64,000 nt of DNA from Carpediemonas membranifera BICM. Lineage: Eukaryota > Protista > Fornicata. The stretch is taken from the NCBI GenBank assembly GCA_019828565.1, contig JAHDYR010000006.1, forward strand, positions 371,643 to 435,642, written 5' to 3'. Below the pieces are notes generated by a model that saw only the letters and a program-made list of their open reading frames with translations, searched no databases and was not told the DNA's origin. Positions 1,547 to 41,857 of this stretch are shown piece by piece (within the stretch, counting starts at the first letter, position 1; the number at the start of each line of letters is the position of its first letter). The position numbers were made by a program, and so were the translations under genes.

Positions 1547-4500
1547 ATGTCTGATAACGAAGACCTGCCGCCGCAAGACAGTCCCGATGAGCTTAACAAG
1601 CGTATCGAGAAGCTGGAGCGCTTGGTTAAGATACAATCGGAAGCAATTTTGGAGCAGCAAGCAGAAGCAGCTCGCCGTCCACTGTTCCTGGAGATGCCAA
1701 AGAGGTTCGGCCTCGAAGATGAGGCCAGATTCGTATACAAGACCATGAATAGGATCGAGAACGGCGCAAAGATGAAGGAGATCGGGAACATTCTCTTTGC
1801 AAGAATCCAGTACCTTCTAATCAAGGACGTGTACACTGACGCTACTGCAGAGCGGTGTGCCGGGGCGAAGAGATTGGAACATTTACATAAACTGCGGACG
1901 TGGATGCCTTATGACATCCTACCCCCCTTAAGCTTGAGCTTGTGGGACTTGAGGTAGTCACGTGCCGCAGTGACGTGGCGGAGCCCGTCAGCGGGTTCCC
2001 ATGTGGGATCGTAGTCGCCCTCCCAGCAGACGAGGAGCTGCAGTGTGCCGTTGCGGCGACGGTGCTTCTCGATGCCTTGCACGACGTACGTCTGCTCGTC
2101 GGAGGCGGCGAGGTTCTTCAGGCGGCTGAGCCCCGACTTGGTGTTGAAAGGAAGGACCTGGTCTACGTGAGCCATGAAGGGGGCGCTCTCGAAAAGGTCG
2201 ACCAGCTGAAGGGTGTTGTTGTCCTTGATGGCGAGAATCTTGAACGGGCCGGCGAAGCCATGCAGCTTTGGGGTCTTCGTCCGGTTGAGCAGGACGAGGT
2301 CGCCTTCCTTGAAGCTAGTCGGCTGGCGGTCGGCGTTGGCCTTGGCGAGGCGCTTGTCTACAGTCTCGCGCTGCTTCTCGGCCGCCCTAGAGGTCAACTT
2401 GGAGAGGTGGGCTCGAAGTAAAGTGATGTAGGCTGAGGCTGAGGCAAGGGGCGAGTCATTGTCGCTCGGTCGGAGGATTCTAGCGACTGTGGAGCTGGGG
2501 TCGAGTTGGTCTCCATACAGCATGGCGTGGGGTGTGACCCCAGTGGCGCTGCAGGTGGTTGTGTTCAGCAGCAGCTGAACTACCGGAAGGAGGTCGCTCC
2601 AACGGGAGAACTTGTCGGATTGGAGGATCAAACAGCGAAGATGCTTCATGACCTCCGCGTTACGACGCTCTACCAGCCCATTCGACTGAGGGTGGTAGGG
2701 GAGGGTGAATTGCTGGGTGATGTCCGCGCTTTCGAGCAGGGCCTTGACGACGTTGCCGGTGAACTCAGGCCCGTTGTCGGACTTGATGAACAGGGGAGTC
2801 CCATGACGGGTAATCACCTGGCGCCAGAGGGCCTCTGACGCTGCATCAGCTGTGTTCTCGTCCGTCGCGGCCAACTCAGTGTAGCGAGTAAACATATCGA
2901 CCATAACTGTGATGTATCTGGAGCCGACTGCGTCTGCCGGGATTGGACCAATAGTATCCACTGCGACAGTGTGGAACGGTTTGTACACTGCTGTTGTGCG
3001 GAGCTCTGCCTCGGCGAAGTTGCGTAGGCGAGCTTTCTGGCACTCGTCACATGAGGCGATGAACTCCTCGACATCTGCTGTGAAGCCTGTCCAGGTATAG
3101 CCGTCTGCTCTCAGGCGTTCGATGGTAGCCTTGGCGCCGTGGTGTCCTCTGTGGGCGATCTGTATCAGCTCCTTTCGGAGGGGTCTGCACACGGTTGAAG
3201 TAGGGATGACGACGAGGCCGTCCTTGCGGCGAAGACCGTCGCTGTCTACGGTCAGCTTGGAGACGGTAGAGTCGTCTGTCTGGTGTTTGATGAGTGTGTC
3301 ATGGTAGCGGGAGTCAGTCGTGATGGCTGCGACAGTGGGCGAGGTCGAGTGACCGCAGCGGCTCAGCGCGTCTGCGACTGCGTTCTGTAGGCCGGGAACG
3401 TGCTCGACATCGAACTTGTAGTCTGCTAATGTCAGTCTCCACCGGTTGATCTTGTCGTTCTCGGATGACTTGGCGATCATGTAAATAAGATTACGGTGGT
3501 CGGTCCGTAGGAGGAACCTCTTCAGGCGTAGGAGGGGTGACAGGGTCGGGTGTGTAAGGCAAAAGACAATGGCAAATAGCTCCTGCTCACACGTGGCCCA
3601 GCGCGACTGGGTTGACGTGAATGTGTGAGAGAAGTAGGCGAGGACCTGTGTCTTGTCGTCCTTTGTCTGCCATAGTACGCCGCCTGCTCCGATGTTGCTA
3701 GCGTCTGTCTCGAGCGTCCAGTCGGCGTCGGCGTCCGGATGTGCGATAAAGAGATCGTCAGTGAACAGGGTCTTCAGGCCGTCGAAAGCGGCGTCGTGCT
3801 CCGCTGTCCATTCCCACAGACGGTCCTTTTGCAGAAGATCGTTGAGAGGTCTCATGTACTCGTGTCGTGTATGGGGAACGAATGATGCGAGGTACTGGAA
3901 CTGTCCGAGGACTACGCGAAGCTCGTGGACGTTGGTGGGTGCAGGTAGATCGCGTAGGGCTTGGGTCCTGGCTGGGTCGACGTGTACTCCGGCCTGGTCG
4001 ACCGTAAAGCCGACAATCTTGGCGCTGGTGGTGCCGAAGACTCCCTTCTTGGCGCTGAACTGAACGCCTGCAGCGTCCGCGCGTGTGAGCAGGTCGCGGA
4101 GAATGCGTAGGAAGGAGTCATCGTCACGGGCGTAGATGAATATGTCGTCGATGTAGGGGTTGGCGCCCTTGTACAACAGTGGGGCGAGCATGCCTTCGAT
4201 CTCCCGCTGGAAGTGAGAAGGCGCGTTGCAAAGGCCGAACGGCATCCTGAGGAATTCCTCGTAGACGCCCGGGGCGGTGAAGGCCGTCTTAGGCACGTCG
4301 TCTGGGTGCATGGCCACCTGCCAGTAGCCCGACGTCAGGTCTAGCGTCGCAAAGCGTGTGCAGCCCGACGCGAGGTTGAGGAGTTCTCGCATGTTGGGGA
4401 TCGGGTGCCGGTCGGGTACTGTCCAAGAGTTGAGGCGGCCGTAGTCGATACAGAGACGGTAGGCGTCGCCCTTTGCGACCAGGACGATGGGGCTTGCGTA

Positions 4501-23796: not shown

Positions 23797-26700
23797 TTAC
23801 AGACCGGCTCGCTTGGCCTCGTCTGACTTCAGGAATATGTCTAGCGCCTCTAGGTCCTTGACTGACGAATAGTCTTGCCACGTGGCCTCTTCGTCTTCGC
23901 ACCCAGCCCAATGGACGAGGTATTCCCGCTTGGACATCGGGCCTCGACCTCGAGATCGACTGATTCGCTCAACTTCCCACTCGTCGTCAGCCGTGGCTGC
24001 GAGTGCTTTGATCTGATCTTCTGTCAGCCTGCCGGGATTGAACTTCCGAACTCTCGATGCGTCTACCGTGATCGCTTTCGAGTTGTCCTTCTCAGCTAGG
24101 TCTAAAACCTTATACGCGACAACGACACCGTGTTGTTTCACTCCGGCGAGCCTTCGCATTGGCCCTCTCCATCCAGGTGACAACTTGTTCGGTGGTCTAG
24201 AGGGGTACTTGACTAGGACGAACCTGCTAATAATCTCATTCCTCGAGGCAGTAGCCTTTGCGAGGGCGTCCTCTCTTATCGCCTGGACTCGGCTGCTGGC
24301 GAGTTGGACAGCCGCTGCGGCCGCTTCCCTGTGAGACTCACTCGCGCTCGCTGTACTAGAATCAGTCACATACACGTTCTGTGGTATTCTCAGGTCGTAC
24401 CCGAGAACTATCTCGGCTGGTGACAGGCGTGTAGACGTGCGCGGGGATGAATTAACGATGAACTGGGCGACAGGTAGATTCTCGATCCAGGTTGACCCTC
24501 TGAGCTGAAAATTACGCGCCTTGAGGATGCGTAATACTTGCTGGTTGGCGCGCTCTACCATCCCATTGGATTGCGGGTGGTGAGCCGTGGTAATATGGAT
24601 CTTGAACCCCATCTCATCTGCGATGCGCTTGAAGAGTTGGTTCTTGAACTCTGGTCCTCCGTCGGATTGGAGAACCTCAGGGCACCCGAAACGCAATATC
24701 CAGTTGTTGACCAGGGCGTCCGCTGCTGCCGCGCCGGTGGTACTCGAAGATGCGACTAGCTCAGTCCACCGACTGCACATGTCGATCATGACTGTGATGT
24801 AAGCCTTGCCGTCGACGGAGGGGAAAGGCCCCATCGTGTCAACTGCCACCCTACGGAACGGGCGATCTACGGCTGTGTGCAATCCTGACGGGCTGTCAAC
24901 CGGAGGGCGTCTAATCACCTGGCACACCGGGCAGTTTTCGATGACCTTGCTGACAGTCTCACGTGATACTGACTTGCCTTGGTCCTTGAGTCGTTCAGTA
25001 ACTACACGTCGGGAGAGGTGGGCCCCGGCGGTGAGGTGTTCTGCTTCAACGTCATCTTCTGATGCGGACTGCATAACGTACACTCGCGATAAGCCGTCTG
25101 CCCCACCGTTATCAAGGCCAGCGACGTGCTTGACGTCGAAGTCCATGTCGGACATAGCCTCAGCCCATCTGCGGACCTTGGCGTTAGTCGACTTGTACAT
25201 GTAAATCAGGTTGCGATGGTCCGTGAGAAGGGTGAACTTTCCCCAGGAGAGGTACTTGTTCCATCGCTTAATGGCGGCGACGATGGCGAATGCCTCCTTC
25301 TCTCCGACCGACCATCGCGATTGCACTTGGTCAAAGGCCTTGCTCATAAAGCACACGGGTTGGCCTTCCTGCAATAGCACAGCGCCGTAGCCTACTCCTG
25401 ACGCGTCGGTCATGATGGTGTGTTCCTTGGACGCATCGAAGATGGCGAGTGCTTCTGCTTGGGCGAGGAGTGTCTTGACTTTGCGTAGGGCTTGCTCTTG
25501 CTCGTCGCCACCCAGCGGGATCTTGGAGGCCATCGCTTGAGTTAAGGGGTGTACTACTTCTGCGAAACCAGGGACATGATCCCGGAAATAGTTAAGAAAT
25601 CCGACGAGCGCTTGCATTCCCTTGACCGACTTAGGCATTTCGAGATCCAGGATGTCTTGAATGCGGTCCGCTGCGATGCGTTGACAGCCATGGGATATGA
25701 CCCTGCCCAGGAACTCGACCTCGGCCCTCGAAAACTGGCACTTGTCACGGTTGAGTTGTAACTTGATCTGTCTAGTACGCTGCAGCACGCTCTCCAGGTT
25801 CTTGAGGTAATCCTCCTCGTTTTCCCCGAAGACAATGATATCGTCGATATAGATATAACAGGCGTGACCAACCAGTTCGGCGAAAGCCGACTCCATGGCA
25901 CGCTGAAAGTGAGCTCCTGCGTTCCTTAGCCCGAAGGGCATCCTAGTGTATTGATATTGACCTAGAATGGTGGTGAACGCAGTGTACTTGCGGCAGCGTT
26001 TGGTCAGTTCGACCTGGTGATAACCCGACGACAGGTCTAGTGTGGCGAAGATCTTCTTGTTGGGTAGTTGGGCGATCACCTCGTCGATCATTGGGATCGG
26101 GTAGTCGAAAGTGGGGGTGATCTCGTTGATCTGCCGGAAATCCACGACGAAGCGCGACTTCCCGCCCTTCTTCGGCACCGTCATGGCCGGGGATGCGTAC
26201 GGTGAGTTGCTTCTCTCGATAAACCCCTTCAAGGACAGCTCGTCGATGTGCTCCCGTATTATGTCGACCTTGGCTGGTGGGACGAAGTATGGTCTGGCGT
26301 TGACCACTCGGTCCTCGCGTAGGATGAGGTCATACGGCTCGAGGCGGCTGGGTTCGCTACGGTCCTCGAACACGTCGCTATAACGTCTGATGAGCTCGGC
26401 CTGCCGGTCGATGCTGGTCTGCGACAAAGAAAACAATGGTGCCTGATACTTGTACACGTCCGGAATCTCGATCTCGTCATCATCTTGCTCGTCGGTGTAG
26501 GCTTGGGGAAGGATTCCCAGTGCTACCATGTCTGGATATCCGATAATCATGTCGAACTCAGTGTCAAGTAGCAGCATACGTGGCTTGTAGGAGCACGCCT
26601 TGGGTGTAAACGCTGACGCTAGCAGTCTTACGTCGCCTTCAACAGCGCCTTGCGCGTGAAGAATACCCTTGTTGGCGGTACGGATCGGAATAACCTCGGA

Positions 26701-27747
26701 GCTAACTTTTGTCAGCTTGGACGCCCACGTGCTCTTGATGATCGTGACTCCGGCACCTGAATCAAGTAGAGCAGTGAGGTTGTGACCATTAATCTGGACT
26801 TTGATCAAGGGAACAGATGGCTTAGTCTCGGTCTCGCCCTTAGTCTTTGACGGTTCGCCCTCGGCCGGTGACTCCTTGGAACTTAAAACACACACGCACT
26901 TGGAGGATTTACAGTAATCCTCCAGGTGGCCGACACGACCACACTTCTTACATGTGTGCTTGGGCTTCTTACACTTGAACACCGAGTGACCCTTGCCACC
27001 GCAGTTATAGCAGGTGTAGTTAGAGTAGTCCTTTGCCGGCTTCTCCTTCTTGATTGCCTTGTGGCCCTTGTTGGTTTCAGCCGACCGGTTATCGGACGAG
27101 GGCTTCTTCGGGATCACAGACGAGTCGTGTCTGCGGTCATGGCGGGACGTGTAGGGTTGACGAGAGGGAGCGTCTTCGAAAGCGCTTAGTAGATCCCGTG
27201 ACTCTTGGACTTCACGTGCTAGGGCTAGGACGGCGGGCATAGCCTTTTCCAGAGGCTGGTCCTCGATGAGCTCTTGGATGCGGTACATGGCCTTGGGGTT
27301 GCTCTTAAAGGCACGCGTATACGCCTCCTTGAGGTTGTCCTCGTTGAGGGACTTCCCATCGAACAGGGACAAGAGGAGAGTGAACTTCCGATTGACGCGT
27401 GCGACCTGTACCGTGTCGAAGCTGTTGGCTCTTAGACGGAACAGCTGGAGGCGTGAGGTCTTGGTTCTGGGTTGCAGGGCTTGTCCGAGCCGCTTGAGAG
27501 TTCCCTGATCCTTCAGATCGCGGATGTTCTTCCTTGAGGCTACTAGGGGAGTGTGATCGTCGTCTTCGTCCTGCGTAGTGGATAGGATCGTGGCAATGAG
27601 GTCTTGTACCGAGCTATCAATCAAGTCTGAGATATCCCGATGGCCTCCGTAAGCGCGATAGTCGCGGAAGGCCTCGGCGAAAGTGATGAGAGCCTCAACT
27701 GACGGAACCGTTAGTAGAGGAGGTATAAGGCGTTTCTTATCGTTCAT
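23797..27747 (-). CDS. Gypsy-2 Gag-Pol polyprotein (2 CCHC, protease, RT, RNase H, integrase, chromodomain)
   Basis: CYNCGGKGHSVFKC, LLDSGA, YIDD, TDAS, VAVD..SDGG..VER, WEVERI..YLVHWAG. Confidence 0.97.
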   Translation of the reverse strand: MNDKKRLIPPLLTVPSVEALITFAEAFRDYRAYGGHRDISDLIDSSVQDLIATILSTTQDEDDDHTPLVASRKNIRDLKDQGTLKRLGQALQPRTKTSRLQLFRLRANSFDTVQVARVNRKFTLLLSLFDGKSLNEDNLKEAYTRAFKSNPKAMYRIQELIEDQPLEKAMPAVLALAREVQESRDLLSAFEDAPSRQPYTSRHDRRHDSSVIPKKPSSDNRSAETNKGHKAIKKEKPAKDYSNYTCYNCGGKGHSVFKCKKPKHTCKKCGRVGHLEDYCKSSKCVCVLSSKESPAEGEPSKTKGETETKPSVPLIKVQINGHNLTALLDSGAGVTIIKSTWASKLTKVSSEVIPIRTANKGILHAQGAVEGDVRLLASAFTPKACSYKPRMLLLDTEFDMIIGYPDMVALGILPQAYTDEQDDDEIEIPDVYKYQAPLFSLSQTSIDRQAELIRRYSDVFEDRSEPSRLEPYDLILREDRVVNARPYFVPPAKVDIIREHIDELSLKGFIERSNSPYASPAMTVPKKGGKSRFVVDFRQINEITPTFDYPIPMIDEVIAQLPNKKIFATLDLSSGYHQVELTKRCRKYTAFTTILGQYQYTRMPFGLRNAGAHFQRAMESAFAELVGHACYIYIDDIIVFGENEEDYLKNLESVLQRTRQIKLQLNRDKCQFSRAEVEFLGRVISHGCQRIAADRIQDILDLEMPKSVKGMQALVGFLNYFRDHVPGFAEVVHPLTQAMASKIPLGGDEQEQALRKVKTLLAQAEALAIFDASKEHTIMTDASGVGYGAVLLQEGQPVCFMSKAFDQVQSRWSVGEKEAFAIVAAIKRWNKYLSWGKFTLLTDHRNLIYMYKSTNAKVRRWAEAMSDMDFDVKHVAGLDNGGADGLSRVYVMQSASEDDVEAEHLTAGAHLSRRVVTERLKDQGKSVSRETVSKVIENCPVCQVIRRPPVDSPSGLHTAVDRPFRRVAVDTMGPFPSVDGKAYITVMIDMCSRWTELVASSSTTGAAAADALVNNWILRFGCPEVLQSDGGPEFKNQLFKRIADEMGFKIHITTAHHPQSNGMVERANQQVLRILKARNFQLRGSTWIENLPVAQFIVNSSPRTSTRLSPAEIVLGYDLRIPQNVYVTDSSTASASESHREAAAAAVQLASSRVQAIREDALAKATASRNEIISRFVLVKYPSRPPNKLSPGWRGPMRRLAGVKQHGVVVAYKVLDLAEKDNSKAITVDASRVRKFNPGRLTEDQIKALAATADDEWEVERISRSRGRGPMSKREYLVHWAGCEDEEATWQDYSSVKDLEALDIFLKSDEAKRAGL

Positions 27748-28075: not shown

Positions 28076-28150
28076 TGGTGCGACGGCCGAGACTCGAACT
28101 CGGGTCTCGAGAGCCACAATCTCGTGTCCTACCGCCTAGACTACCATCGC
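28076..28150 (-). tRNA. trnH: tRNA-His(GTG) with encoded CCA
   Basis: GCGATGG/CCGTCGC acceptor, GTCT/GGAC D stem, CGAGA-TTGTGGC-TCTCG anticodon arm, CCGAG-TTCGAGT-CTCGG T arm, ACCA then CTTTT. Confidence 0.95.
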
Positions 28151-31100
28151 CGTTTAATAGGTCGAAAACCTCCTTTCACGCTGCGTCCAGAGACGTTCGC
28201 GCCTGTATTCCCGCGCCTGTGTCGACTTAGATGTGTCACCTGTGGGCATCCCTTGTTCGGCTCCTCCGGCTGCTCCCGCAGCCTCGTCGCCGGCCCCCTC
28301 GGCCTTTCCACACGCGAGATGAGATTCCAGCACAAATTATTCCCGCAGCCAGTCCTGCGCTGTGGCCCGCTCGAACTGCGTGACGTAATCCGAGTAGATC
28401 TGGACGTTGCCGTTCCAGATGCAGCGCATCACTTCCTGCTCCAGGAAGCGGCCGGCCCCCACACTCAGGCCGACCATCTTACACAATCTCACACACCAGG
28501 ACTCGCCCTGGTCATCACTGCACGCTTCGCCAGTGATCTCGCAGGCGGCCGTCAGTAGCTCGGCTGACCAGTTGTGGTACTGCGCGGACTTGTCTGACTC
28601 GGCGTTGGCCTGATCCTTCGAGATCACCACGTCGATGATGATGGGCTCGTTGGCGACCCTGCCCGTGGGAGAGCGACGCAGCGGGACATAGACGTCGGCG
28701 CGAGCGTTACTCTGGTAGGCTGGGTCGGCCGAGTAGCCGCGGGTGCGACTGTTCAAGGCGAACTCCTTGCGGGCAAGCACGTCGTTACTCCACAGGAAGG
28801 AGCGCACGCAGTCACGAACTAGGTCATGACGCATGGTCCTGGCACCCTCCAGGAGCTTAGGACAGGACAACGTGTGCTGCCACGACACATTCGAGTTACC
28901 GCAGAGCGGGCAGCGGACGGTTGAGTCCGTCTCGAACGGTGGTGCGCCGAGGTGTGACCTCACCATGGTGGTGAAAAGGTCGCCACGGATCGGCGTCGCA
29001 TAGGAGAGGGGGACAGGGCGGCTTCGGCCGCGAGAATCGGGGTCACCGGGGTCGACTCCACGATCGGGGCGACGGCTGCTGCATGGGCGCGAGAGATTTT
29101 TGTTAGGGTGCGCTGAAGGCCAGTCACGGGCTTGCCGTAGAGCTGGTCCATCCCACGAGGCCAGTCGATGGAGGTGTCGTTGGCGGCGAAGGTTGATTCG
29201 TCGGGGGTTCTGTCCCAGCCCACATCGTGCAGTTGGGCGGTTGCGGCTAGGTAAGCTGCGTCCCAGGTCATGCTCGGGGTGGGCAGGCGGAGGCCGTTAT
29301 CGGAGAAATCGAGGCCGAGCCGGAGTGAGTTGTACTTCTCAGGGTCTAGGAGAAGAATTCTCGCAATCGCCGGCGTCAGGACGTTGGACTCGAAGTTTCG
29401 TATGGTCTCACGGTGTTGGGCTGGATCGACAGATCTCATCAAAAATGAAAGCTTCGGCAGAATACACGAACGGATAAGATTCAGAGCAACGGACGTCCCA
29501 TCCGTTCCAATGACTTCAACCATCGACACCACACTAAGCAACATCTGTTTCTGCTCGTCTAGCTTCGTCATGAGCTGCATCCGTTCCGCTTCGATGCCGC
29601 CAATGGGAATTCCCACGATTACTCCAGTTGGCGAGCACGTAACGCGAACAGTACGTGCATTCTGCGGCGCGGATGCACAAATCCACTGGCATTTAGCCGG
29701 TTTCATTGTTACGCCAATTTGTCGGAAAGCTTCACAAGCTCCATCGAAAAAGCCCTGGATGGCGCCGCTAGTCGTCCCCGGGGGGGCAATCCATGTGACG
29801 TCGTCCTGGTAGGCAACCCACTCGCCGCCCCATTTCGTCTTCAGCGTGTCGATGATTGGCCGCATGGCCAGCGTGAACAGAATGGGGGACAGTGGGTCTC
29901 CTTGAGCGATGCCCTCTAGGGACTCGACGACGCGGCCGGACGGCAGAACCAGCCTTCCATTGCCATATACGGCGTCAAAGTACGGGATCGCAACAGGGCA
30001 GGCCGCAGCGGCTGTGGACCTCAACAATTTGCGGGGCATGGTGCCGTACGCATTGCTGAGATCAACGGCGCAGATGCTTTGGCCACGGGAATACGCTTCT
30101 TGCAGGCGCAGACCCATAACTTCTGTGCCGCACGACTCACCCCGCCCGTACTGGTCATCGAGGAGAGGGTCATCCGCGAGGGACGCGGTAACCGCCTTGG
30201 CTAGTAGCTTGGCTGCTACTCGACGAAGGGCCTCTCCCATGGCGATGGGCCGGACCTCGTCGGGTTTGCCAGGCTTGGGCAGTGGGACGAGGCGGGAGTG
30301 GGCCAGAACGTTTGTGTACGGGACGCCTTCGGCCACATCGACAAGTAGTGGCTTCAGGGCAAGGGCGAAGGCTTCTGGCTTGTGTCTAGCAGCGAGCTTC
30401 AAGTGGAGGAAGCTCATGCCCGACGGACCGGGGAGCCGAGTCGGCCGGAAGACTGCTCAGGACATCGATGATGTCCCGAGTTTCGAACTCTACCGAGGTG
30501 AGCGGGGCGAGGGGATGGCGGATTGGGAGGTCATCAAGACTGCCTTGGAAGGGGTCAGCTTGCATCCGAACCATCTTCTCCTCTGCTTCGGCTGGGGTCA
30601 TCTGCAGTTCTTCCGAGACCAGGGCACTCATGGACTTGCTGTAGTACCCTCGTCTGGCGTGCTGGTAGGCGAGTCGGCTTCTCGACGTGCTTCCCACCTG
30701 ATTATGGCGGGTCCTCCGGGGGCGAAGTGCTGTTTGTGGGTGCAGCATCACGTCGATGAGACGATCGCGCTTGTCCTCATCTCTGGCTGCCGCGCAGGCG
30801 GTGACCTTTCCGATGAGGGCACGGACATAACCCTTGGTTCCCCTCCGCGTCGGTCGGCTGCGGCCGATGCGAGCCACGTCGGCGGGGTCTGGAAGGAACC
30901 CAAGAGGTCTTGTAGGCGCTCGGGTCTGCCTATTGTTGGTGGCCTGTGTTGCAGGGTGCGCCAATATAGCAGGGAGCGGCAGCCCCAGAGCGATGTGCGC
31001 TGCGGCCGCAACACGGCGTGAGCCATGTTTGGCCACAATCCCGTTCGACGGGAACCGGCGCGAGAAGTGGGGGGGCAGGGTTAGGCCGCCTGCGGCACGC

Positions 31101-32116
31101 AGGAGACACGTCTCAATCTCGATGGCTTGCGCCTTCGTGAGGTGCCTCCTGCGCTCCGTCCCCATGGCTCGCTCGAGCGCGGGGGGCGAGAGAAGCGTCT
31201 GGCGGACTGTGTCGGCATCACGCCAGAGCTCTTCCCGCAGGTCCGGGTGGATGGCGTCCCGTAGGTCACGAGCGAAGGCTGCGATAGCCTGGTTCACTCG
31301 GACCGTTGGTACGTCCATCCCCCGGTGGTTGGTGTCAGCCACGCTTTGGCCGCCAGGCATGGGAGCGGGTGCCCCGTTATGTCTAGGCTGGACATTCGTG
31401 GGCCGACTGGTCTCCCTCGCTGTCGTTAGGTCTAGGCACGATGCCTGTCTCCTGTGACTGGGCGGGGGTGGGTGGTCCTGAGCCGAGAGGTGGACTTATC
31501 GGGGGTATAAGCTCCGCGATCATCATCTCCTCCCTCTCGATTTGCGTTCTTGATGTTTGGTGGGCTGACGCAACGGGTCCGTTGTCAATCTCATCGATGG
31601 TGGAGAGCCGTGGGCATCCCGCCGCCCGTAGTTGCTCTAGTAGAGCCCTGCGGCGGCCTAGGGATAGCGTATGGTCACGGCCCTCTGTGTCTATACGGAT
31701 TCGCGAGTCCATTCGGTGCATCAGGAATTGGACGGGATGCGGCGGTAGGTTCCTGATCAACTGGATTGAGCTTAGTACTTGGTGTAATCTCTGCTTGAAG
31801 TCTCGGTTTGAGGGCCTCTGGATCACTGGGAAGAGCGGACTCACAGTGGCAATGAGTTCTTCGGAGACTCTCTTGGTGAAGCGCTCGGGACGTCCTCTAT
31901 CTTGAATGAACAGCTTTTTCACAAGCTCTACATCGTTAAAGAGGCGGCGGACTTTCTGGTACGAGGACCAGTGTTCGGCAAAGAGAGATTTTGGTACATG
32001 CTTACCAAACAGAATGCGCACGGCGTCGAAGATCTGGGAAACAGGATCTTCGAGCTGGATAGTTCCTTCAGTCCCGCTCAGAAGCCGCTCCACGACTTCT
32101 TTGCTGACAAAGACTG
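28151..32116 (-). mobile_element. CRE-like non-LTR retrotransposon unit 1
   Basis: RT and RLE motifs; bounded on both sides by the first 13 nt of tRNA-His. Confidence 0.92.
28337..31360 (-). CDS. Unit 1 RT + CCHC + restriction-like endonuclease (frameshifts at homopolymers near 29010 and 30400-30580)
   Basis: LPKPG..VRPIAMGE, VDLSNAY, GIAQGDPLSP, AYQDD; CPLC..HTLSC, RHD, RAD, IIDV, ESDKSAQY. Confidence 0.9.
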
Positions 32117-32126
32117 AGACTACCAT
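31383..32126 (-). CDS. Unit 1 5' ORF (247 aa); ATG lies in the tRNA-derived 13-mer
   Basis: Identical ORF in unit 2; GCG-ATG-GTA-GTC-T|CA-GTC. Confidence 0.6.
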   Translation of the reverse strand: MVVSVFVSKEVVERLLSGTEGTIQLEDPVSQIFDAVRILFGKHVPKSLFAEHWSSYQKVRRLFNDVELVKKLFIQDRGRPERFTKRVSEELIATVSPLFPVIQRPSNRDFKQRLHQVLSSIQLIRNLPPHPVQFLMHRMDSRIRIDTEGRDHTLSLGRRRALLEQLRAAGCPRLSTIDEIDNGPVASAHQTSRTQIEREEMMIAELIPPISPPLGSGPPTPAQSQETGIVPRPNDSEGDQSAHECPA

Positions 32127-32129
32127 CGC

Positions 32130-35100
32130 CGTTTAATAGGTCGAAAACCTCCTTTCACGCTGCGTCCAGAGACGTTCGCGCCTGTATTCCCGCGCCTGTG
32201 TCGACTTAGATGTGTCACCTGTGGGCATCCCTTGTTCGGCTCCTCCGGCTGCTCCCGCAGCCTCGTCGCCGGCCCCCTCGGCCTTTCCACACGCGAGATG
32301 AGATTCCAGCACAAATTATTCCCGCAGCCAGTCCTGCGCTGTGGCCCGCTCGAACTGCGTGACGTAATCCGAGTAGATCTGGACGTTGCCGTTCCAGATG
32401 CAGCGCATCACTTCCTGCTCCAGGAAGCGGCCGGCCCCCACACTCAGGCCGACCATCTTACACAATCTCACACACCAGGACTCGCCCTGGTCATCACTGC
32501 ACGCTTCGCCAGTGATCTCGCAGGCGGCCGTCAGTAGCTCGGCTGACCAGTTGTGGTACTGCGCGGACTTGTCTGACTCGGCGTTGGCCTGATCCTTCGA
32601 GATCACCACGTCGATGATGATGGGCTCGTTGGCGACCCTGCCCGTGGGAGAGCGACGCAGCGGGACATAGACGTCGGCGCGAGCGTTACTCTGGTAGGCT
32701 GGGTCGGCCGAGTAGCCGCGGGTGCGACTGTTCAAGGCGAACTCCTTGCGGGCAAGCACGTCGTTACTCCACAGGAAGGAGCGCACGCAGTCACGAACTA
32801 GGTCATGACGCATGGTCCTGGCACCCTCCAGGAGCTTAGGACAGGACAACGTGTGCTGCCACGACACATTCGAGTTACCGCAGAGCGGGCAGCGGACGGT
32901 TGAGTCCGTCTCGAACGGTGGTGCGCCGAGGTGTGACCTCACCATGGTGGTGAAAAGGTCGCCACGGATCGGCGTCGCATAGGAGAGGGGGACAGGGCGG
33001 CTTCGGCCGCGAGAATCGGGGTCACCGGGGTCGACTCCACGATCGGGGCGACGGCTGCTGCATGGGCGCGAGAGATTTTTGTTAGGGTGCGCTGAAGGCC
33101 AGTCACGGGCTTGCCGTAGAGCTGGTCCATCCCACGAGGCCAGTCGATGGAGGTGTCGTTGGCGGCGAAGGTTGATTCGTCGGGGGTTCTGTCCCAGCCC
33201 ACATCGTGCAGTTGGGCGGTTGCGGCTAGGTAAGCTGCGTCCCAGGTCATGCTCGGGGTGGGCAGGCGGAGGCCGTTATCGGAGAAATCGAGGCCGAGCC
33301 GGAGTGAGTTGTACTTCTCAGGGTCTAGGAGAAGAATTCTCGCAATCGCCGGCGTCAGGACGTTGGACTCGAAGTTTCGTATGGTCTCACGGTGTTGGGC
33401 TGGATCGACAGATCTCATCAAAAATGAAAGCTTCGGCAGAATACACGAACGGATAAGATTCAGAGCAACGGACGTCCCATCCGTTCCAATGTCTTCAACC
33501 ATCGACACCACACTAAGCAACATCTGTTTCTGCTCGTCTAGCTTCGTCATGAGCTGCATCCGTTCCGCTTCGATGCCGCCAATGGGAATTCCCACGATTA
33601 CTCCAGTTGGCGAGCACGTAACGCGAACAGTACGTGCATTCTGCGGCGCGGATGCACAAATCCACTGGCATTTAGCCGGTTTCATCGTTACGCCAATTTG
33701 TCGGAAAGCTTCACAAGCTCCATCGAAAAAGCCCTGGATGGCGCCGCTAGTCGTCCCCGGGGGGGCAATCCATGTGACGTCGTCCTGGTAGGCAACCCAC
33801 TCGCCGCCCCATTTCGTCTTCAGCGTGTCGATGATTGGCCGCATGGCCAGCGTGAACAGAATGGGGGACAGTGGGTCTCCTTGAGCGATGCCCTCTAGGG
33901 ACTCGACGACGCGGCCGGACGGCAGAACCAGCCTTCCATTGCCATATACGGCGTCAAAGTACGGGATCGCAACAGGGCAGGCCGCAGCGGCTGTGGACCT
34001 CAACAATTTGCGGGGCATGGTGCCGTACGCATTGCTGAGATCAACGGCGCAGATGCTTTGGCCACGGGAATACGCTTCTTGCAGGCGCAGACCCATAACT
34101 TCTGTGCCGCACGACTCACCCCGCCCGTACTGGTCATCGAGGAGAGGGTCATCCGCGAGGGACGCGGTAACCGCCTTGGCTAGTAGCTTGGCTGCTACTC
34201 GACGAAGGGCCTCTCCCATGGCGATGGGCCGGACCTCGTCGGGTTTGCCAGGCTTGGGCAGTGGGACGAGGCGGGAGTGGGCCAGAACGTTTGTGTACGG
34301 GACGCCTTCGGCCACATCGACAAGTAGTGGCTTCAGGGCAAGGGCGAAGGCTTCTGGCTTGTGTCTAGCAGCGAGCTTCAAGTGGAGGAAGCTCATGCCC
34401 GACGGACCGGGAGCCGAGTCGGCCGGAAGACTGCTCAGGACATCGATGATGTCCCGAGTTTCGAACTCTACCGAGGTGAGCGGGGCGAGGGGATGGCGGA
34501 TTGGGAGGTCATCAAGACTGCCTTGGAAGGGGTCAGCTTGCATCCGAACCATCTTCTCCCTCTGCTTCGGCTGGGGTCATCTGCAGTTCTTCCGAGACCA
34601 GGGCACTCATGGACTTGCTGTAGTACCCTCGTCTGGCGTGCTGGTAGGCGAGTCGGCTTCTCGACGTGCTTCCCACCTGATTATGGCGGGTCCTCCGGGG
34701 GCGAAGTGCTGTTTGTGGGTGCAGCATCACGTCGATGAGACGATCGCGCTTGTCCTCATCTCTGGCTGCCGCGCAGGCGGTGACCTTTCCGATGAGGGCA
34801 CGGACATAACTCCTTGGTTCCCCTCCGCGTCGGTCGGCTGCGGCCGATGCGAGCCACGTCGGCGGGGTCTGGAAGGAACCCAAGAGGTCTTGTAGGCGCT
34901 CGGGTCTGCCTATTGTTGGTGGCCTGTGTTGCAGGGTGCGCCAATATAGCAGGGAGCGGCAGCCCCAGAGCGATGTGCGCTGCGGCCGCAACACGGCGTG
35001 AGCCATGTTTGGCCACAATCCCGTTCGACGGGAACCGGCGCGAGAAGTGGGGGGGCAGGGTTAGGCCGCCTGCGGCACGCAGGAGACACGTCTCAATCTC

Positions 35101-36097
35101 GATGGCTTGCGCCTTCGTGAGGTGCCTCCTGCGCTCCGTCCCCATGGCTCGCTCGAGCGCGGGGGGGCGAGAGAAGCGTCTGGCGGACTGTGTCGGCATC
35201 ACGCCAGAGCTCTTCCCGCAGGTCCGGGTGGATGGCGTCCCGTAGGTCACGAGCGAAGGCTGCGATAGCCTGGTTCACTCGGACCGTTGGTACGTCCATC
35301 CCCCGGTGGTTGGTGTCAGCCACGCTTTGGCCGCCAGGCATGGGAGCGGGTGCCCCGTTATGTCTAGGCTGGACATTCGTGGGCCGACTGGTCTCCCTCG
35401 CTGTCGTTAGGTCTAGGCACGATGCCTGTCTCCTGTGACTGGGCGGGGGTGGGTGGTCCTGAGCCGAGAGGTGGACTTATCGGGGGTATAAGCTCCGCGA
35501 TCATCATCTCCTCCCTCTCGATTTGCGTTCTTGATGTTTGGTGGGCTGACGCAACGGGTCCGTTGTCAATCTCATCGATGGTGGAGAGCCGTGGGCATCC
35601 CGCCGCCCGTAGTTGCTCTAGTAGAGCCCTGCGGCGGCCTAGGGATAGCGTATGGTCACGGCCCTCTGTGTCTATACGGATTCGCGAGTCCATTCGGTGC
35701 ATCAGGAATTGGACGGGATGCGGCGGTAGGTTCCTGATCAACTGGATTGAGCTTAGTACTTGGTGTAATCTCTGCTTGAAGTCTCGGTTTGAGGGCCTCT
35801 GGATCACTGGGAAGAGCGGACTCACAGTGGCAATGAGTTCTTCGGAGACTCTCTTGGTGAAGCGCTCGGGACGTCCTCTATCTTGAATGAACAGCTTTTT
35901 CACAAGCTCTACATCGTTAAAGAGGCGGCGGACTTTCTGGTACGAGGACCAGTGTTCGGCAAAGAGAGATTTTGGTACATGCTTACCAAACAGAATGCGC
36001 ACGGCGTCGAAGATCTGGGAAACAGGATCTTCGAGCTGGATAGTTCCTTCAGTCCCGCTCAGAAGCCGCTCCACGACTTCTTTGCTGACAAAGACTG
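32130..36097 (-). mobile_element. CRE-like unit 2
   Basis: Near-identical repeat with period 3979-3981 bp. Confidence 0.92.
32316..35341 (-). CDS. Unit 2 RT + RLE (homopolymer frameshifts)
   Basis: Same motifs as unit 1. Confidence 0.9.
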
Positions 36098-36107
36098 AGA
36101 CTACCAT
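35364..36107 (-). CDS. Unit 2 5' ORF (247 aa)
   Basis: Identical to 31383-32126. Confidence 0.6.
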   Translation of the reverse strand: MVVSVFVSKEVVERLLSGTEGTIQLEDPVSQIFDAVRILFGKHVPKSLFAEHWSSYQKVRRLFNDVELVKKLFIQDRGRPERFTKRVSEELIATVSPLFPVIQRPSNRDFKQRLHQVLSSIQLIRNLPPHPVQFLMHRMDSRIRIDTEGRDHTLSLGRRRALLEQLRAAGCPRLSTIDEIDNGPVASAHQTSRTQIEREEMMIAELIPPISPPLGSGPPTPAQSQETGIVPRPNDSEGDQSAHECPA

Positions 36108-36110
36108 CGC

Positions 36111-38288
36111 CGTTTAATAGGTCGAAAACCTCCTTTCACGCTGCGTCCAGAGACGTTCGCGCCTGTATTCCCGCGCCTGTGTCGACTTAGATGTGTCACC
36201 TGTGGGCATCCCTTGTTCGGCTCCTCCGGCTGCTCCCGCAGCCTCGTCGCCGGCCCCCTCGGCCTTTCCACACGCGAGATGAGATTCCAGCACAAATTAT
36301 TCCCGCAGCCAGTCCTGCGCTGTGGCCCGCTCGAACTGCGTGACGTAATCCGAGTAGATCTGGACGTTGCCGTTCCAGATGCAGCGCATCACTTCCTGCT
36401 CCAGGAAGCGGCCGGCCCCCACACTCAGGCCGACCATCTTACACAATCTCACACACCAGGACTCGCCCTGGTCATCACTGCACGCTTCGCCAGTGATCTC
36501 GCAGGCGGCCGTCAGTAGCTCGGCTGACCAGTTGTGGTACTGCGCGGACTTGTCTGACTCGGCGTTGGCCTGATCCTTCGAGATCACCACGTCGATGATG
36601 ATGGGCTCGTTGGCGACCCTGCCCGTGGGAGAGCGACGCAGCGGGACATAGACGTCGGCGCGAGCGTTACTCTGGTAGGCTGGGTCGGCCGAGTAGCCGC
36701 GGGTGCGACTGTTCAAGGCGAACTCCTTGCGGGCAAGCACGTCGTTACTCCACAGGAAGGAGCGCACGCAGTCACGAACTAGGTCATGACGCATGGTCCT
36801 GGCACCCTCCAGGAGCTTAGGACAGGACAACGTGTGCTGCCACGACACATTCGAGTTACCGCAGAGCGGGCAGCGGACGGTTGAGTCCGTCTCGAACGGT
36901 GGTGCGCCGAGGTGTGACCTCACCATGGTGGTGAAAAGGTCGCCACGGATCGGCGTCGCATAGGAGAGGGGGACAGGGCGGCTTCGGCCGCGAGAATCGG
37001 GGTCACCGGGGTCGACTCCACGATCGGGGCGACGGCTGCTGCATGGGCGCGAGAGATTTTTGTTAGGGTGCGCTGAAGGCCAGTCACGGGCTTGCCGTAG
37101 AGCTGGTCCATCCCACGAGGCCAGTCGATGGAGGTGTCGTTGGCGGCGAAGGTTGATTCGTCGGGGGTTCTGTCCCAGCCCACATCGTGCAGTTGGGCGG
37201 TTGCGGCTAGGTAAGCTGCGTCCCAGGTCATGCTCGGGGTGGGCAGGCGGAGGCCGTTATCGGAGAAATCGAGGCCGAGCCGGAGTGAGTTGTACTTCTC
37301 AGGGTCTAGGAGAAGAATTCTCGCAATCGCCGGCGTCAGGACGTTGGACTCGAAGTTTCGTATGGTCTCACGGTGTTGGGCTGGATCGACAGATCTCATC
37401 AAAAATGAAAGCTTCGGCAGAATACACGAACGGATAAGATTCAGAGCAACGGACGTCCCATCCGTTCCAATGTCTTCAACCATCGACACCACACTAAGCA
37501 ACATCTGTTTCTGCTCGTCTAGCTTCGTCATGAGCTGCATCCGTTCCGCTTCGATGCCGCCAATGGGAATTCCCACGATTACTCCAGTTGGCGAGCACGT
37601 AACGCGAACAGTACGTGCATTCTGCGGCGCGGATGCACAAATCCACTGGCATTTAGCCGGTTTCATTGTTACGCCAATTTGTCGGAAAGCTTCACAAGCT
37701 CCATCGAAAAAAGCCCTGGATGGCGCCGCTAGTCGTCCCCGGGGGGCAATCCATGTGACGTCGTCCTGGTAGGCAACCCACTCGCCGCCCCATTTCGTCT
37801 TCAGCGTGTCGATGATTGGCCGCATGGCCAGCGTGAACAGAATGGGGGACAGTGGGTCTCCTTGAGCGATGCCCTCTAGGGACTCGACGACGCGGCCGGA
37901 CGGCAGAACCAGCCTTCCATTGCCATATACGGCGTCAAAGTACGGGATCGCAACAGGGCAGGCCGCGGCGGCTGTGGACCCTCAACAATTTGCGGGGCAT
38001 GGTGCCGTACGCATTGCTGAGATCAACGGCGCAGATGCTTTGGCCACGGGAATACGCTTCTTGCAGGCGCAGACCCATAACTTCTGTGCCGCACGACTCA
38101 CCCCGCCCGTACTGGTCATCGAGGAGAGGGTCATCCGCGAGGGACGCGGTAACCGCCTTGGCTAGTAGCTTGGCTGCTACTCGACGAAGGGCCTCTCCCA
38201 TGGCGATGGGCCGGACCTCGTCGGGTTTGCCAGGCTTGGGCAGTGGGACGAGGCGGGAGTGGGCCAGAACGTTTGTGTACGGGACGCC
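36111..38288 (-). mobile_element. CRE-like unit 3, 3' part only, cut inside RT by element A copy 2
   Basis: Identity to the other units stops at gggacgcc|CATACTG. Confidence 0.92.
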
Positions 38289-38785
38289 CATACTGTTAGA
38301 ATGGCCAGTTAATCCGGGGATATACGGAGGATAAACACCCTTTTGCACAAGAAACTGCAAGAAAAAATGAGATTCACCCGTATCTTTTTCACTATTTCAC
38401 ACGTTTCACCAACGTTTGTGAAACGTAGAGAAACGTGCGGAAGGTACGGGTAAGTCTCATTTTTGCTTGCATACGACGTGCTAGGGGCATTCTTGTGATT
38501 CGTAGGTAGGTGCTGATGTTGCATAACCATTCATTGCTTATTCAAAGTGATAATAACGTGCTAGTGGTCTTTAAGTTGCTGTATTACATCTATAAACATA
38601 TCTCCTATCTCTTCCAGAACGTGTTGTGTGTCATTCAGCCTCTCATTCACCAACCCCTCGCAATTCAGCCCAGTGATGTGATTTCGTATTTCTCGAACAG
38701 AATCTTGTATCTTGCCGACTTCATGGAGGCAACTGGTCATATGATTAAGCCTTTCGTTCGTGGATAACCGTAACATTGTCGTCAA

Positions 38786-41700
38786 TGTGGTATTTACATG
38801 ACTATGTAGACGCAGTTAGAGCCATTATCACCGCGTAGGAGGTATACCCCTTAAACACTTCACACTTGTTTCCAGACTTCAGTAATTACTACGGTTTGAC
38901 GCAATGGGAGAAGACGTAACGATAGGTCCACCGATGAAGGACCTCACGATCGAAGAGTATATGCGAGTACGAGACATCTACGACACAGTCCAGCCACTGT
39001 CGGAGCACCTCAAGAAACTGGAAGAGGCGAAGATCATCCGTAGGTCGAAGTCGCCCTGGTCGTCGCGCGTGGTCATGGCGAAGAAGAAGGGTGGGGAGTG
39101 GCGCCCGTGCATCAACTATATCCGCTTGAACAAGTTCATCGAGGATCCCCAGCACGACCTCCCGGCCATCGACGACATCATGACGATGCTGGAGGGCAAG
39201 GTCAAGTTCGCAGCCCTGGACGCGAGCAGCGCGTTCCACCAGGTGCCGGTCGAGGAGGGGACGCAGGAGCTGTTGGCGTTCACCACACCCGACGGCCACT
39301 TCACCTATAACACGATGCCGTTCGGGTTGTCGACGGCGGCGGGCCATATGCAGGCAGCGCTGGAGGAGGCGTTCGCGGACATGTTGGGGACGGCCTGCCT
39401 CATCTACGTTGACGACATCCTGGTGTTCGGGGAGACGGTGGAGGAGTACGAGGCCAACCTCCGGCATGTCATGGACCGGGTGAGGGAGCGGAAGATCAAG
39501 CTTAACGAGAAGAAGTGCGCTTTCAACCTTGACGAGGTAGAGTACTTGGGCTGGACTGTGTCGAAGGAGGGACGGTCCGTGCCTGAGTGGAGGGTGGAGG
39601 GTGTACAGAAGCTCGCCCCGGCGCACAACGTCAGCGATGTCAGGGCCCTCCTGGGTATCTTCAACTTCTTCGCGAAGTTCATCCCGGGGTACGCGGACCT
39701 GGCCGAGCCGATCAGGAGGATGGAGCTCAAGGACGCGCCGCCGTGGGGGCCGGACCAGGACAGGGCGCTCGAGGCATTGAAGAAGGCGGTCACGAGCGCG
39801 CCGGTGCTGACACACCCGGACCCGGCGAAGAGACTCGCGCTGTACACGGACGCGTCGGACAAGGGGGTCGGCGCGGTGCTGATGCAGGAGGACGAGGGCG
39901 GCAAGCGGCCGATTATGTTCTTGTCGAAGGCACTGTCCGGCTCGCAGCGCAGGTGGAGCACGTATAGGAAGGAGGCATTCGCCATTGTCCACGCGATCCG
40001 CAAGGCTCGGCGTCTGCTGGCAACGCAGGAGTTCAAGGTGTGGTGTGACCACAGGAACCTCGCGTACGTGTGGGGCGCCAATGACGACATGGTGCAGCGG
40101 TGGGCACTCGAGCTCGCCAACTACAAATTCGACGTGGAGCACGTGCCGGGCAGCCTTAACGAGATCGCCGACGGGCTATCGAGGGCGGCGCTCGCAGAGG
40201 AGCAGGCGAAGCAGGAGCAGGAGGACATTCCGGACCAGAGTCGGACGGAGTCAGACGAGGATGGCCCAGCGGCAGCCGGCGCTGAGACAGAAGAGAGCAA
40301 GCCCAGACCGCAGGGGCAACTGCTGTTCAGAGTAGACGAGTTCAGGACGACACAGGAGGCGAGCCCGACACTGCCGGAGAGTCAGAAGGAAGCGAGGTTC
40401 AAGGAGGTACACGGCGCTGGGAAGGGCCACCATGGGGTGCAACAGACCCTGTGGAAGCTTGAGGACATCGGACTGTCTTGGGACGGAGCCGAAGCTGACG
40501 TGTCAACGATGGTCAAACGATGCCCCGTGTGCCAGAAGTCGGGTATGGGGGGCGACCCGTACCAGTCGAGCGCCGCGCGAGCCGCTGGGACCGTATGGTC
40601 GAGTGTTCGTGGACACCATCGTCATGAAAGAGGCCGACGGCGAGTACCGGAACATCCTGACAGTTGTGGAAGAAACGTCGCGATGGGTCACCCTGGTCCC
40701 GCTGAAGACAGTGTCGTCACGAGAAACCATCGAGGCATTGCAGAGGTTCTACCTCACCCACTTCCCGATGCCGGTCGAGTGGGTAGCAGATAACGGGTCG
40801 CAGTTCGCATCGACCGAGTTTCACGCGTGGGCCAGGGAGACCGGGGCGCGGGTCAACCACACGACGCCGTACTACCACGAGGAGAACGGCGTGGTCGAGC
40901 GGTGGAACAAAGAGGTCAACCGCCACCTGCGGTGCGAGATGTATGAACGGCAGACCAGGAGATGGAAGGGTCTGCTCCCGTCGATCCAGAACATCATCAA
41001 CTCGGCGCGTTCGAGGGCGACCGGGTCGTCGGCGTGGAGACTGGTAGTGGCGGATGGAACCAGAGCGACCGTGGACAAGCTCAAGGAACAGAGGATGGAG
41101 GAGGTGGAGGCTGCGCGCAGGATGATCCAGAACGAAGAAAATAGAAGAAGGAATATGGTGCAGACAGCGGCGAAGAAGAAGCAGGACAGCCAGAAGCGAG
41201 CGGCTGACATTCAGCGGCAGCACCCTGAGTCGCGCGTGGCAGCGGGTTACTGGGTCTTCGTGGATCGCGACGCGGAGATTCGCAAGAAGTACGACCTCAA
41301 GTGGCGCGGACCGTTGATGGTGGTCAGGAAGGTCCCCGGGAAGGCGAACTCGTACGTTGTGCGAGACCCAGAGACGAAGAAGACGTATCAGAAGCACGTT
41401 TCTCACCTGAAAGTCGCCGAGGGAGAGTGGAGCGAAGAGAAGGCCAAAGTAGCATGCGCCTTAGATAGAAGCCAGGCGTATATCAAGAAGATAGTGGACT
41501 GGAGGATTAGAAGAGACGCCAACAGGACACCGGAAGTGAGGTGCAGGTGGCTGGGATTCGAAGCCAGCGAAGACACCTGGAGAGTGGCAACAGACGAAGA
41601 CATGCGGTCCAACATCGTGTTATTGAAGTACATGGAGGACCATAGCCAACTTGCAAAGTGCGTTGACGAGCATTTGCGCAAAGTCGGTCAGAGTCGGAAA

Positions 41701-41827
41701 TAGAAGCATGGCTCTGATGGAGGAGGGGTAGTGTGGTATTTACATGACTATGTAGACGCAGTTAGAGCCATTATCACCGCGTAGGAGGTATACCCCTTAA
41801 ACACTTCACACTTGTTTCCAGACTTCA
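38786..41827 (+). mobile_element. Gypsy-3: 3042-bp LTR element lacking gag and protease; 96-bp LTRs; TSD GTCAA
   Basis: LTRs 38786-38881 and 41732-41827; empty site with a single GTCAA at 7727-7731; purine tract ggaggaggggtag. Confidence 0.97.
38904..41703 (+). CDS. pol: Gypsy-3 RT-RNase H-integrase-chromodomain (frameshift in the G run near 40550)
   Basis: LDASSAFHQ, YVDD, TDAS, ADGLSR, GHHG..CPVC, VFVD..ADNG..VER, CRWLGF..DTW. Confidence 0.92.
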
Positions 41828-41857
41828 GTCAACACCTGCGCAGTTTAAGATGAGAAT

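Follow-up and report, generated by a model that had tools for sequence, protein, structure and literature searches.

What kind of element can insert repeatedly at the very edge of a tRNA gene and leave that gene intact? The question is raised by a 64,000-nucleotide stretch of the Carpediemonas membranifera genome (here called the window; G000:C7:371643-435642 in a host assembly of 24.2 Mb and 69 contigs, which are named C6, C7, C24, C39, C42, C44, etc.), in which head-to-tail copies of a retrotransposon lie directly upstream of a tRNA-His gene. Our analysis indicates that the array is very probably formed by a young, tRNA-His-specific retrotransposon of the type without long terminal repeats (non-LTR). 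The element is ~3.97 kb long and has a single long open reading frame (ORF) for an orphan N-terminal region, a reverse transcriptase (RT), a CCHC zinc knuckle, and an R2-type restriction-like endonuclease (RLE).

The repeat finder detected three in-register copies, spaced by 3979 and 3981-3982 bp, at window positions 28138-38288. The 13-mer GCGATGGTAGTCT, for which the chance expectation is none, occurs exactly three times in the window (28138, 32117, and 36098), always on the minus strand, and the entire array, including the element, the 13-mers, and tRNA-His, is on that strand. Read in the minus direction, the order is partial copy 3 (38288 to 36111), 13-mer, copy 2 (36097 to 32130), 13-mer, copy 1 (32116 to 28151), and tRNA-His. 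An earlier reading of this DNA from its sequence only had described three head-to-tail units of ~3.98 kb, each ending at the first 13 nucleotides (nt) of tRNA-His. The repeat finder and the exact 13-mer positions confirmed the orientation and the junctions; the length holds for the two complete units (3,979 and 3,981 bp) and not for the third, of which just 2.18 kb (unit nt 1803-3979) is present.

The first 13-mer (28138-28150, minus) is identical to the first 13 nt of the only tRNA gene in the whole window. This gene, an intact tRNA-His(GTG) identified by ARAGORN (28076-28150, minus; Rfam RF00005, 62.9 bits), comprises a 72-nt tRNA (28079-28150) and a genomically encoded CCA (28076-28078) and is followed by a TTTT terminator. 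Both programs thereby agree with the earlier observation that the 13-mer at the end of the array continues into an intact tRNA. Copy 1, the tRNA-proximal one, is full length (28151-32116, minus; 3,966 bp excluding the 13-mer), and its terminal G occupies tRNA-His position -1 (window 28151). It contains the RT domain (Pfam RVT_1; 29659-30279, minus), the CCHC zinc knuckle (CPLC...H...C) with the RLE domain (28340-28993, minus), and a 3' untranslated region (UTR) of 186 nt (28151-28336, minus) with the terminus CCTATTAAACG and without poly(A). The predicted fold of this 3' UTR was not more stable than those of shuffled sequences (z = -1.37). The second 13-mer (32117-32129, minus) separates copy 1 from copy 2 (32130-36097, minus), which is also full length and differs from copy 1 by two substitutions and homopolymer indels, and the third (36098-36110, minus) separates copy 2 from copy 3 (36111-38288, minus). 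Every unit in the array terminates in ...GGTTTTCGACCTATTAAACG with no A-run, as expected from the reported lack of a poly(A) tail.

The encoded protein

The RT domain matched Pfam RVT_1 (E = 1.3e-13), and its best sequence matches in PDB were the RTs of R2 and LINE-1 ORF2. The C-terminal 218 codons specify CPLC-x8-H-x3-C followed by RHD, RAD-x-Y, and IIDV motifs; in an alignment with nine relatives, C28, H40, C44, H56, D100, D121, and K135 were invariant and C31 was present in 9 of the 10 sequences. When profiles were compared with PDB, the endonuclease matched R2 residues 991-1137 (E = 3.7e-6). Its AlphaFold (AF2) model (pLDDT 81) had R2Tg, R2Pm, and R2Bm as the only strong Foldseek matches (probability 1.00; TMq 0.55-0.68). 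No Exo_endo_phos domain (the apurinic/apyrimidinic endonuclease [APE] type) was identified by Pfam in any ORF, and the repeat finder revealed no LTRs, the 13-mer being the sole terminal repeat. Judged from these motifs, profiles, and the predicted fold, the element is an RLE-type non-LTR retrotransposon with an RT, a CCHC knuckle, and an R2-like RLE. This identity had been proposed in the sequence-only reading and is now supported by the Pfam RT match, the conserved CCHC/RLE residues, and the profile and fold matches.

No known domain was recognized in the N-terminal region. Its first 480 residues include three cysteines, have no C2H2/CCHH spacing, and gave no match in Pfam or Atlas, and the single-sequence AF2 model was poor (pLDDT 48). 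RVT_1 was the only Pfam domain in the element proteins, and Rfam matched the tRNA alone, with no further family and no hepatitis delta virus (HDV)-like ribozyme.

The start codon of the element lies inside the 13-mer (GCG ATG GTA GTC T). In copy 1, the ATG is at window positions 32124-32126, with an in-frame TAA three codons upstream, within the end of copy 2; since the next Met is ~135 codons downstream, the ATG of the 13-mer is the only usable start. The ORF is open from unit nt 1, and the element has no 5' UTR of its own. In the copy C39a (L004:2313-5474, minus), the ORF begins at this ATG (unit nt 4-6) and runs for 1,054 codons without a stop.

Word-based, HMMER, and cluster searches recovered as relatives just Carpediemonas paralogues and unnamed eukaryotic or metagenomic proteins. 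The closest, at 33-53% identity, form at least seven clusters of C. membranifera paralogues; unnamed proteins come next. In the loci of sister families of this genome (L017-L030), the sequence covered stops before the element termini. One annotated C. membranifera protein, KAG9391670.1, is 99% identical to the N terminus of the element. No tRNA was detected near the remote relatives on six contigs (L045-L050).

Two side observations concern such relatives. A 468-bp piece of the element 5' coding region, 95% identical and with ~10 of 22 changes non-synonymous, is located at G000:C40:126549-127016 (L042) among fragments of a different RLE family, and the NCBI model KAG9392068.1 (P0006) fuses both. 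The two ends of the contig with the closest relative outside Carpediemonas (L045; GCA_002919055.1 PPCM01001310.1) are identical over 87 bp, pointing to an 11.86-kb unit assembled in tandem or as a circle. An RT protein with a weak Dam methyltransferase match and a chromovirus are also found on this contig.

Element copies across the genome

A genome search with the 75-nt tRNA yielded three identical tRNA-His genes (C7:399718, C39:753953, and C6:1271524) with unrelated downstream flanks, and all three of these independent genes have an element array directly upstream. A fourth copy, 88% identical, also follows an element copy. As it shares the flank of the C39 gene, contains many small errors, and adjoins an N run, it probably represents a redundant contig end that was poorly polished, which leaves the number of copies in the C39 array uncertain. 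This noisy copy (G000:C39:780172-781118; L044) carries 0.7 kb of the C39:753953 downstream flank in the middle of the array.

Genome-wide, we counted 25 element 3' ends and 22 5' ends. The 13-mer follows directly after 23 of the 25 3' ends (...TTAAACG and then the 13-mer), leading into the next copy in 20 cases and into the tRNA in 3; the two exceptions are the noisy C39 copy and C44:19181. Conversely, 25 of the 26 occurrences of the 13-mer in the genome are tied to the element or to tRNA, and the lone one (C8:291008) is within chance expectation. Two full copies that lead their arrays (C24:340884 and C44:14784) have the 13-mer as their first bases, and the flanks before it are unrelated (...gacgtctccg| and ...ggtacgccg|). 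The array ends at C24:282-294 kb, C44:19-28 kb, and C39:786-801 kb were taken from coordinates alone. Among the genomic copies, none with an intact 3' junction was found at a site unrelated to tRNA-His. The strict tie to the 5' end of tRNA-His and the sparing of the tRNA itself, both of which had been predicted, are thus borne out by the occupation of every independent gene and by the 3' junctions, and the mapping of copies and flanks revealed no unrelated sites.

Copy 3 of the window is interrupted by a foreign element with a 47-bp terminal inverted repeat (TIR; CATACTGTTAG...) and a 2-bp (GG) duplication. In the window, this TIR (CATACTGTTAGAATGGCC...; 38289-38335, no strand assigned) lies outside the retrotransposon. 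The missing 5' half of copy 3 (unit nt 1-1805) is found at G000:C42:149408-151210, followed by the other end of the 47-bp TIR. We considered whether copy 3 had been shortened during its own insertion; the foreign TIR at 38289 and the matching half on C42 rule this out. Similarly, copy 3 of the C6 array (from nt 2850) pairs with a half on C44 (to nt 2852), the inserted element having a TIR of ~75 bp and a 2-bp duplication, and on C39 two halves of a copy, one beginning at nt 3191 and the other (C39:770012) running to about nt 3208, are 7.2 kb apart. Almost all of the apparently truncated copies are halves of full copies that were split later by other elements. The 5'-truncated copies were also considered as a test of how the target site duplication (TSD) arises and were set aside, as three of the four turned out to be split by later insertions.

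The foreign elements have perfect TIRs of 47 and ~75 bp, CATRCTGT ends, and 2-bp duplications, and they have inserted into the retrotransposon several times (TIRs at window 38289-38335, G000:C42:151211-151257, C44:11889-11935, and C6:1262363-1262437). Two of these insertions are merely 65 bp apart (unit nt 1738/1740 and 1803/1805). The location of matching halves on different contigs (C7/C42 and C6/C44) hints that these contigs adjoin or that the assembly is broken there. At G000:C44:14785-19180, other DNA (4.4 kb, starting with ACTGTTAGTCGACAACAGT) fills the exact interval from an element 3' end to the 13-mer that follows, and a coiled-coil-like ORF is present in it on the opposite strand.

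Integration and growth of the arrays

Three junction features have to be explained: the 3' end of the element lies exactly at tRNA -1/+1, tRNA nt 1-13 are present on both sides of each full copy, and the copies are head to tail. We propose that integration would occur by target-primed reverse transcription. The endonuclease would nick the antisense strand at the tRNA 5' edge (at -1/+1, or up to -3/-2), and cDNA synthesis would be primed from the 3' end of the element RNA (...AAACG). The sense strand would be cut ~13 bp further inside, at tRNA nt 13/14. In this way, nt 1-13 would be duplicated on both sides, and the downstream tRNA gene would be rebuilt intact and would stay a target, the newest copy being the one adjoining the tRNA. 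Because the mRNA must carry the ATG, the element RNA should start within or just before the 13-mer, and pairing of the cDNA end with target nt 1-13 would favor full-length copies with precise 5' junctions. The duplication may be 13, 14, or 15 bp long, since both the element end (..ACG) and the leading flanks (..CCG) have C and G at positions -2 and -1.

The 13-mer may, on the other hand, be copied from the element RNA and used as homology for 5' joining. According to this explanation, both strands are cut at or near tRNA -1/+1, and the 13-mer is the element's own 5' leader, 13 nt once captured from the target that now serve as a start-codon leader and as homology for 5' joining. The sole start codon is in the 13-mer, so a translatable RNA needs at least nt 4-13, and nearly every copy is full length, which a requirement for 5' homology would explain. 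The single candidate for a copy truncated upon insertion (C39:813770, unit nt 3622) has no 13-mer upstream, which lends weak support, but this is the only informative truncated copy, and its flank may be secondary. A staggered cut and an RNA-borne 13-mer yield an identical final structure, and we regard the RNA-borne leader as possible but somewhat doubtful.

Several observations weigh against a young, tRNA-His-specific, single-ORF element inserting by a staggered cut. An unbroken ORF is present in no copy as assembled, the window units included, and a -1 frame change between the RT and the endonuclease is common to all copies. The 3' end at C44:19181 abuts other DNA (ACTGTTAGTCGACAACAGT..., apparently another insertion) and not the 13-mer, and the assembly does not resolve part of the C39 array, which has an N gap and a noisy duplicate. 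There is no empty tRNA-His site in the C. membranifera genome that would show the nick positions or decide among the three duplication lengths. Finally, the two public runs that contain the sequence give four contigs of 150-190 nt, which are 100% identical but do not span any junction or the frame-change region. One of these runs, X2, is a microbial mat metagenome from 2018, in which two short contigs match unit nt 3365-3668 at 100% identity; this suggests that C. membranifera or a very close strain was present in that sample.

As for the reading frame, nearly all of the indels between copies are in homopolymer runs. This is the signature of an imperfectly polished long-read assembly, and the scattered frameshifts may not be genuine. 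A stop at unit nt 3165 ends the RT frame, the -1 frame holds the CCHC/RLE part from nt 2832 onward, and single-ORF relatives align across the frame switch at about nt 3093-3138. No canonical slippery heptamer (X XXY YYZ) was found in the frame overlap. A programmed -1 frameshift at a recoding site, a real compensation, or a systematic under-call may each account for the common frame change. In 3 of the 13 copies, the 130-nt frame-switch stretch contains one extra base, each in a different homopolymer (A5, C5, and T4), and each would join the two frames. The extra bases in this stretch (unit nt 3027-3155; window 28975-29103 in copy 1) are above the overall indel rate and always in the joining direction.

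The tRNA-His-specific family is young, and its eight full copies are at most 15 substitutions apart in 3,960 nt. In C6 and C39, the copies next to the tRNA differ from each other by 5 substitutions and from their own array neighbors by 10 and 12. They have A463, A571, A1440, and T1984 in common; three of these alleles are exclusive to them, and A463 also occurs in the C44 copy. This kinship fits repeated insertion into the intact tRNA at the 3' end of the array, with the newest copy beside the tRNA, and the suggestion that the arrays were built by repeated insertion therefore agrees with the copy relationships.

Alternatively, each locus may have received one insertion, and the arrays may have grown mainly by unequal crossing-over or local tandem duplication. 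This explanation would account for the locus-specific variants (T1745 and T2134 in C7, C2263 in C6, and G3843 in C39) and for the two C7 copies, which differ by merely 2 substitutions. However, it leaves unexplained why the proximal copies of C6 and C39 resemble each other more than their neighbors and share four alleles that the neighbors lack, and it requires that multi-copy arrays were reached at three independent loci. We therefore find it quite unlikely as the main route. The same locus-specific variants and the near identity of the C7 copies nevertheless show a contribution from local events, for which reinsertion from a neighbor, gene conversion, and unequal exchange are candidates.

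That the array is an artifact of the assembly, with one insertion duplicated, is extremely improbable. Homopolymer indels do show that the repeats are imperfectly polished, and the C39 array region has an N gap and a noisy redundant end, but the copies within arrays carry distinct substitutions, the arrays are spread over five contigs and include three loci whose flanks are unique, and individual copies are split by different foreign insertions. We also considered an element that carries the tRNA itself, which is ruled out by the internal units, as they contain just 13 nt of tRNA-His.

Repeated insertion beside the tRNA may be combined with a broader reading, in which the element lives off tRNA processing and its array context; as a whole, we consider this unlikely. 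Speculatively, the AT-rich end CTATTAAACG of one copy could act as the initiator for the next, whose mRNA might then start in the 13-mer and have a leader of ~3 nt, a length that is tolerated in Giardia-type translation. It can further be speculated that the RNase P cut at the tRNA-His 5' end trims a read-through transcript to the template 3' end (...AAACG) and, equally tentatively, that an entire radiation of sister families in the C. membranifera genome uses the same 12- to 14-bp stagger on other tRNAs with exchangeable N-terminal targeting regions. If this were true, the tRNA gene would supply expression, template definition, and target regeneration.

All of the tRNA-His genes have a G at position -1, which is the last base of the element, and an encoded CCA. 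No match to Thg1 (PF04446) was obtained in a six-frame search of the genome, and an absence from the assembly is not proof of absence. The G-1 of tRNA-His may be genome encoded or may not be needed. With the element upstream of all its tRNA-His genes, C. membranifera may have tRNA-His expression and maturation that are shaped by it.

Two Ty3/gypsy-type LTR retrotransposons flank the array (window 23797-27747, minus, and 38786-41829). One has protease, RT, RNase H, integrase, and chromodomain, and one has 98-bp LTRs. The first (23797-27747) begins ~330 bp behind tRNA-His. Downstream of the tRNA-His genes of C7 and C6, a common ...AAATGGGGGG...ATTTAC motif is found ~80-105 bp past the tRNA. The LTR element near the tRNA and this shared motif indicate that other elements may also home to tRNA genes.

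The retrotransposon is a natural example of a "harmless" site-specific element, in which a multicopy RNA gene is struck to the nucleotide and then rebuilt. The rebuilding keeps both the tRNA-His supply of the host and the landing site of the element itself. For gene insertion with R2-type enzymes, the sequence points to a compact single-ORF candidate with an unrecognized, putatively targeting N-terminal region and a target present in all eukaryotes.

Comparison with known elements

The novelty of the element had been overstated, since the literature already describes tRNA-gene-specific RLE families: NeSL-1_TV in tRNA-Pro of Trichomonas vaginalis, LIN15_SM in tRNA-Arg, and LIN25_SM in tRNA-Glu (Kojima and Jurka 2015, PMC4640811). 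The Carpediemonas element resembles these families in being a non-LTR retrotransposon with a C-terminal RLE and one kind of tRNA gene as its target, and NeSL-1_TV is from another metamonad. It differs in its target, tRNA-His, and may differ in its position at the 5' edge of the gene, which stays intact. In addition, its ORF starts in the duplicated target bases, and no N-terminal zinc fingers or protease domain were detected; in a Pfam search that returned RVT_1 alone, neither the N-terminal zinc fingers nor the Ulp1-like protease of the NeSL clade was found.

An N-terminal zinc finger is typical of the CRE, NeSL, and R2 clades. The CRE-clade elements CRE1, CRE2, SLACS, and CZAR reside in trypanosomatid spliced-leader genes, inserting at a fixed short distance (11-13 nt) into a small multicopy RNA gene, and fungal members target telomeres. 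With this clade, the Carpediemonas element shares the single-ORF architecture of RT, CCHC, and RLE, but it lacks poly(A), and its tRNA target is regenerated and not interrupted. No N-terminal C2H2 finger was found in the translation of 480 residues or by Pfam or Atlas, and the target is neither a spliced-leader gene nor a telomere. The only lead to CRE is the automatic NCBI name "SLACS" of the Carpediemonas paralogue P0010, and CRE membership is not established.

The similarities to R2 are an RLE that is homologous by profile and fold, a precise 3' junction, and the absence of poly(A). Work from the Eickbush laboratory reportedly indicates that in some R2 lineages the RNA has target sequence at its 5' end, through which the cDNA can anneal to the target. 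The features that define the R2 clade were not detected: Pfam and the translation revealed no N-terminal zinc-finger/Myb domain, Rfam revealed no 5' HDV-like ribozyme, and the target is not 28S rDNA. R2 disrupts its 28S rDNA target, whereas the Carpediemonas element preserves the tRNA, and R2Bm makes a small deletion in place of a ~13-bp duplication.

Head-to-tail arrays are also formed by GilM, GilT, and Genie of Giardia, RLE-type elements of a related protist lineage. Tandem insertion is likewise known for Utopia-1_NVit, and TSDs of 20 bp for Utopia families of reptiles (PMC4640811). Compared by description alone, the Giardia and Utopia elements differ from the Carpediemonas element in their targets, which are telomere or rDNA-adjacent repeats and U2 small nuclear RNA genes. 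Transfer RNA genes serve as safe landing places, with the tRNA left functional, for Dictyostelium TRE5/TRE3 and yeast Ty3. These are APE-type or LTR elements placed by RNA polymerase III factors tens of base pairs from any tRNA gene, whereas sequence directs the Carpediemonas element with single-nucleotide precision to one tRNA species. Particular to it are the lack of a recognizable N-terminal DNA-binding motif, the tRNA-His target, an edge insertion that regenerates the gene, a start codon within the duplicated bases, and the saturation of all tRNA-His genes.

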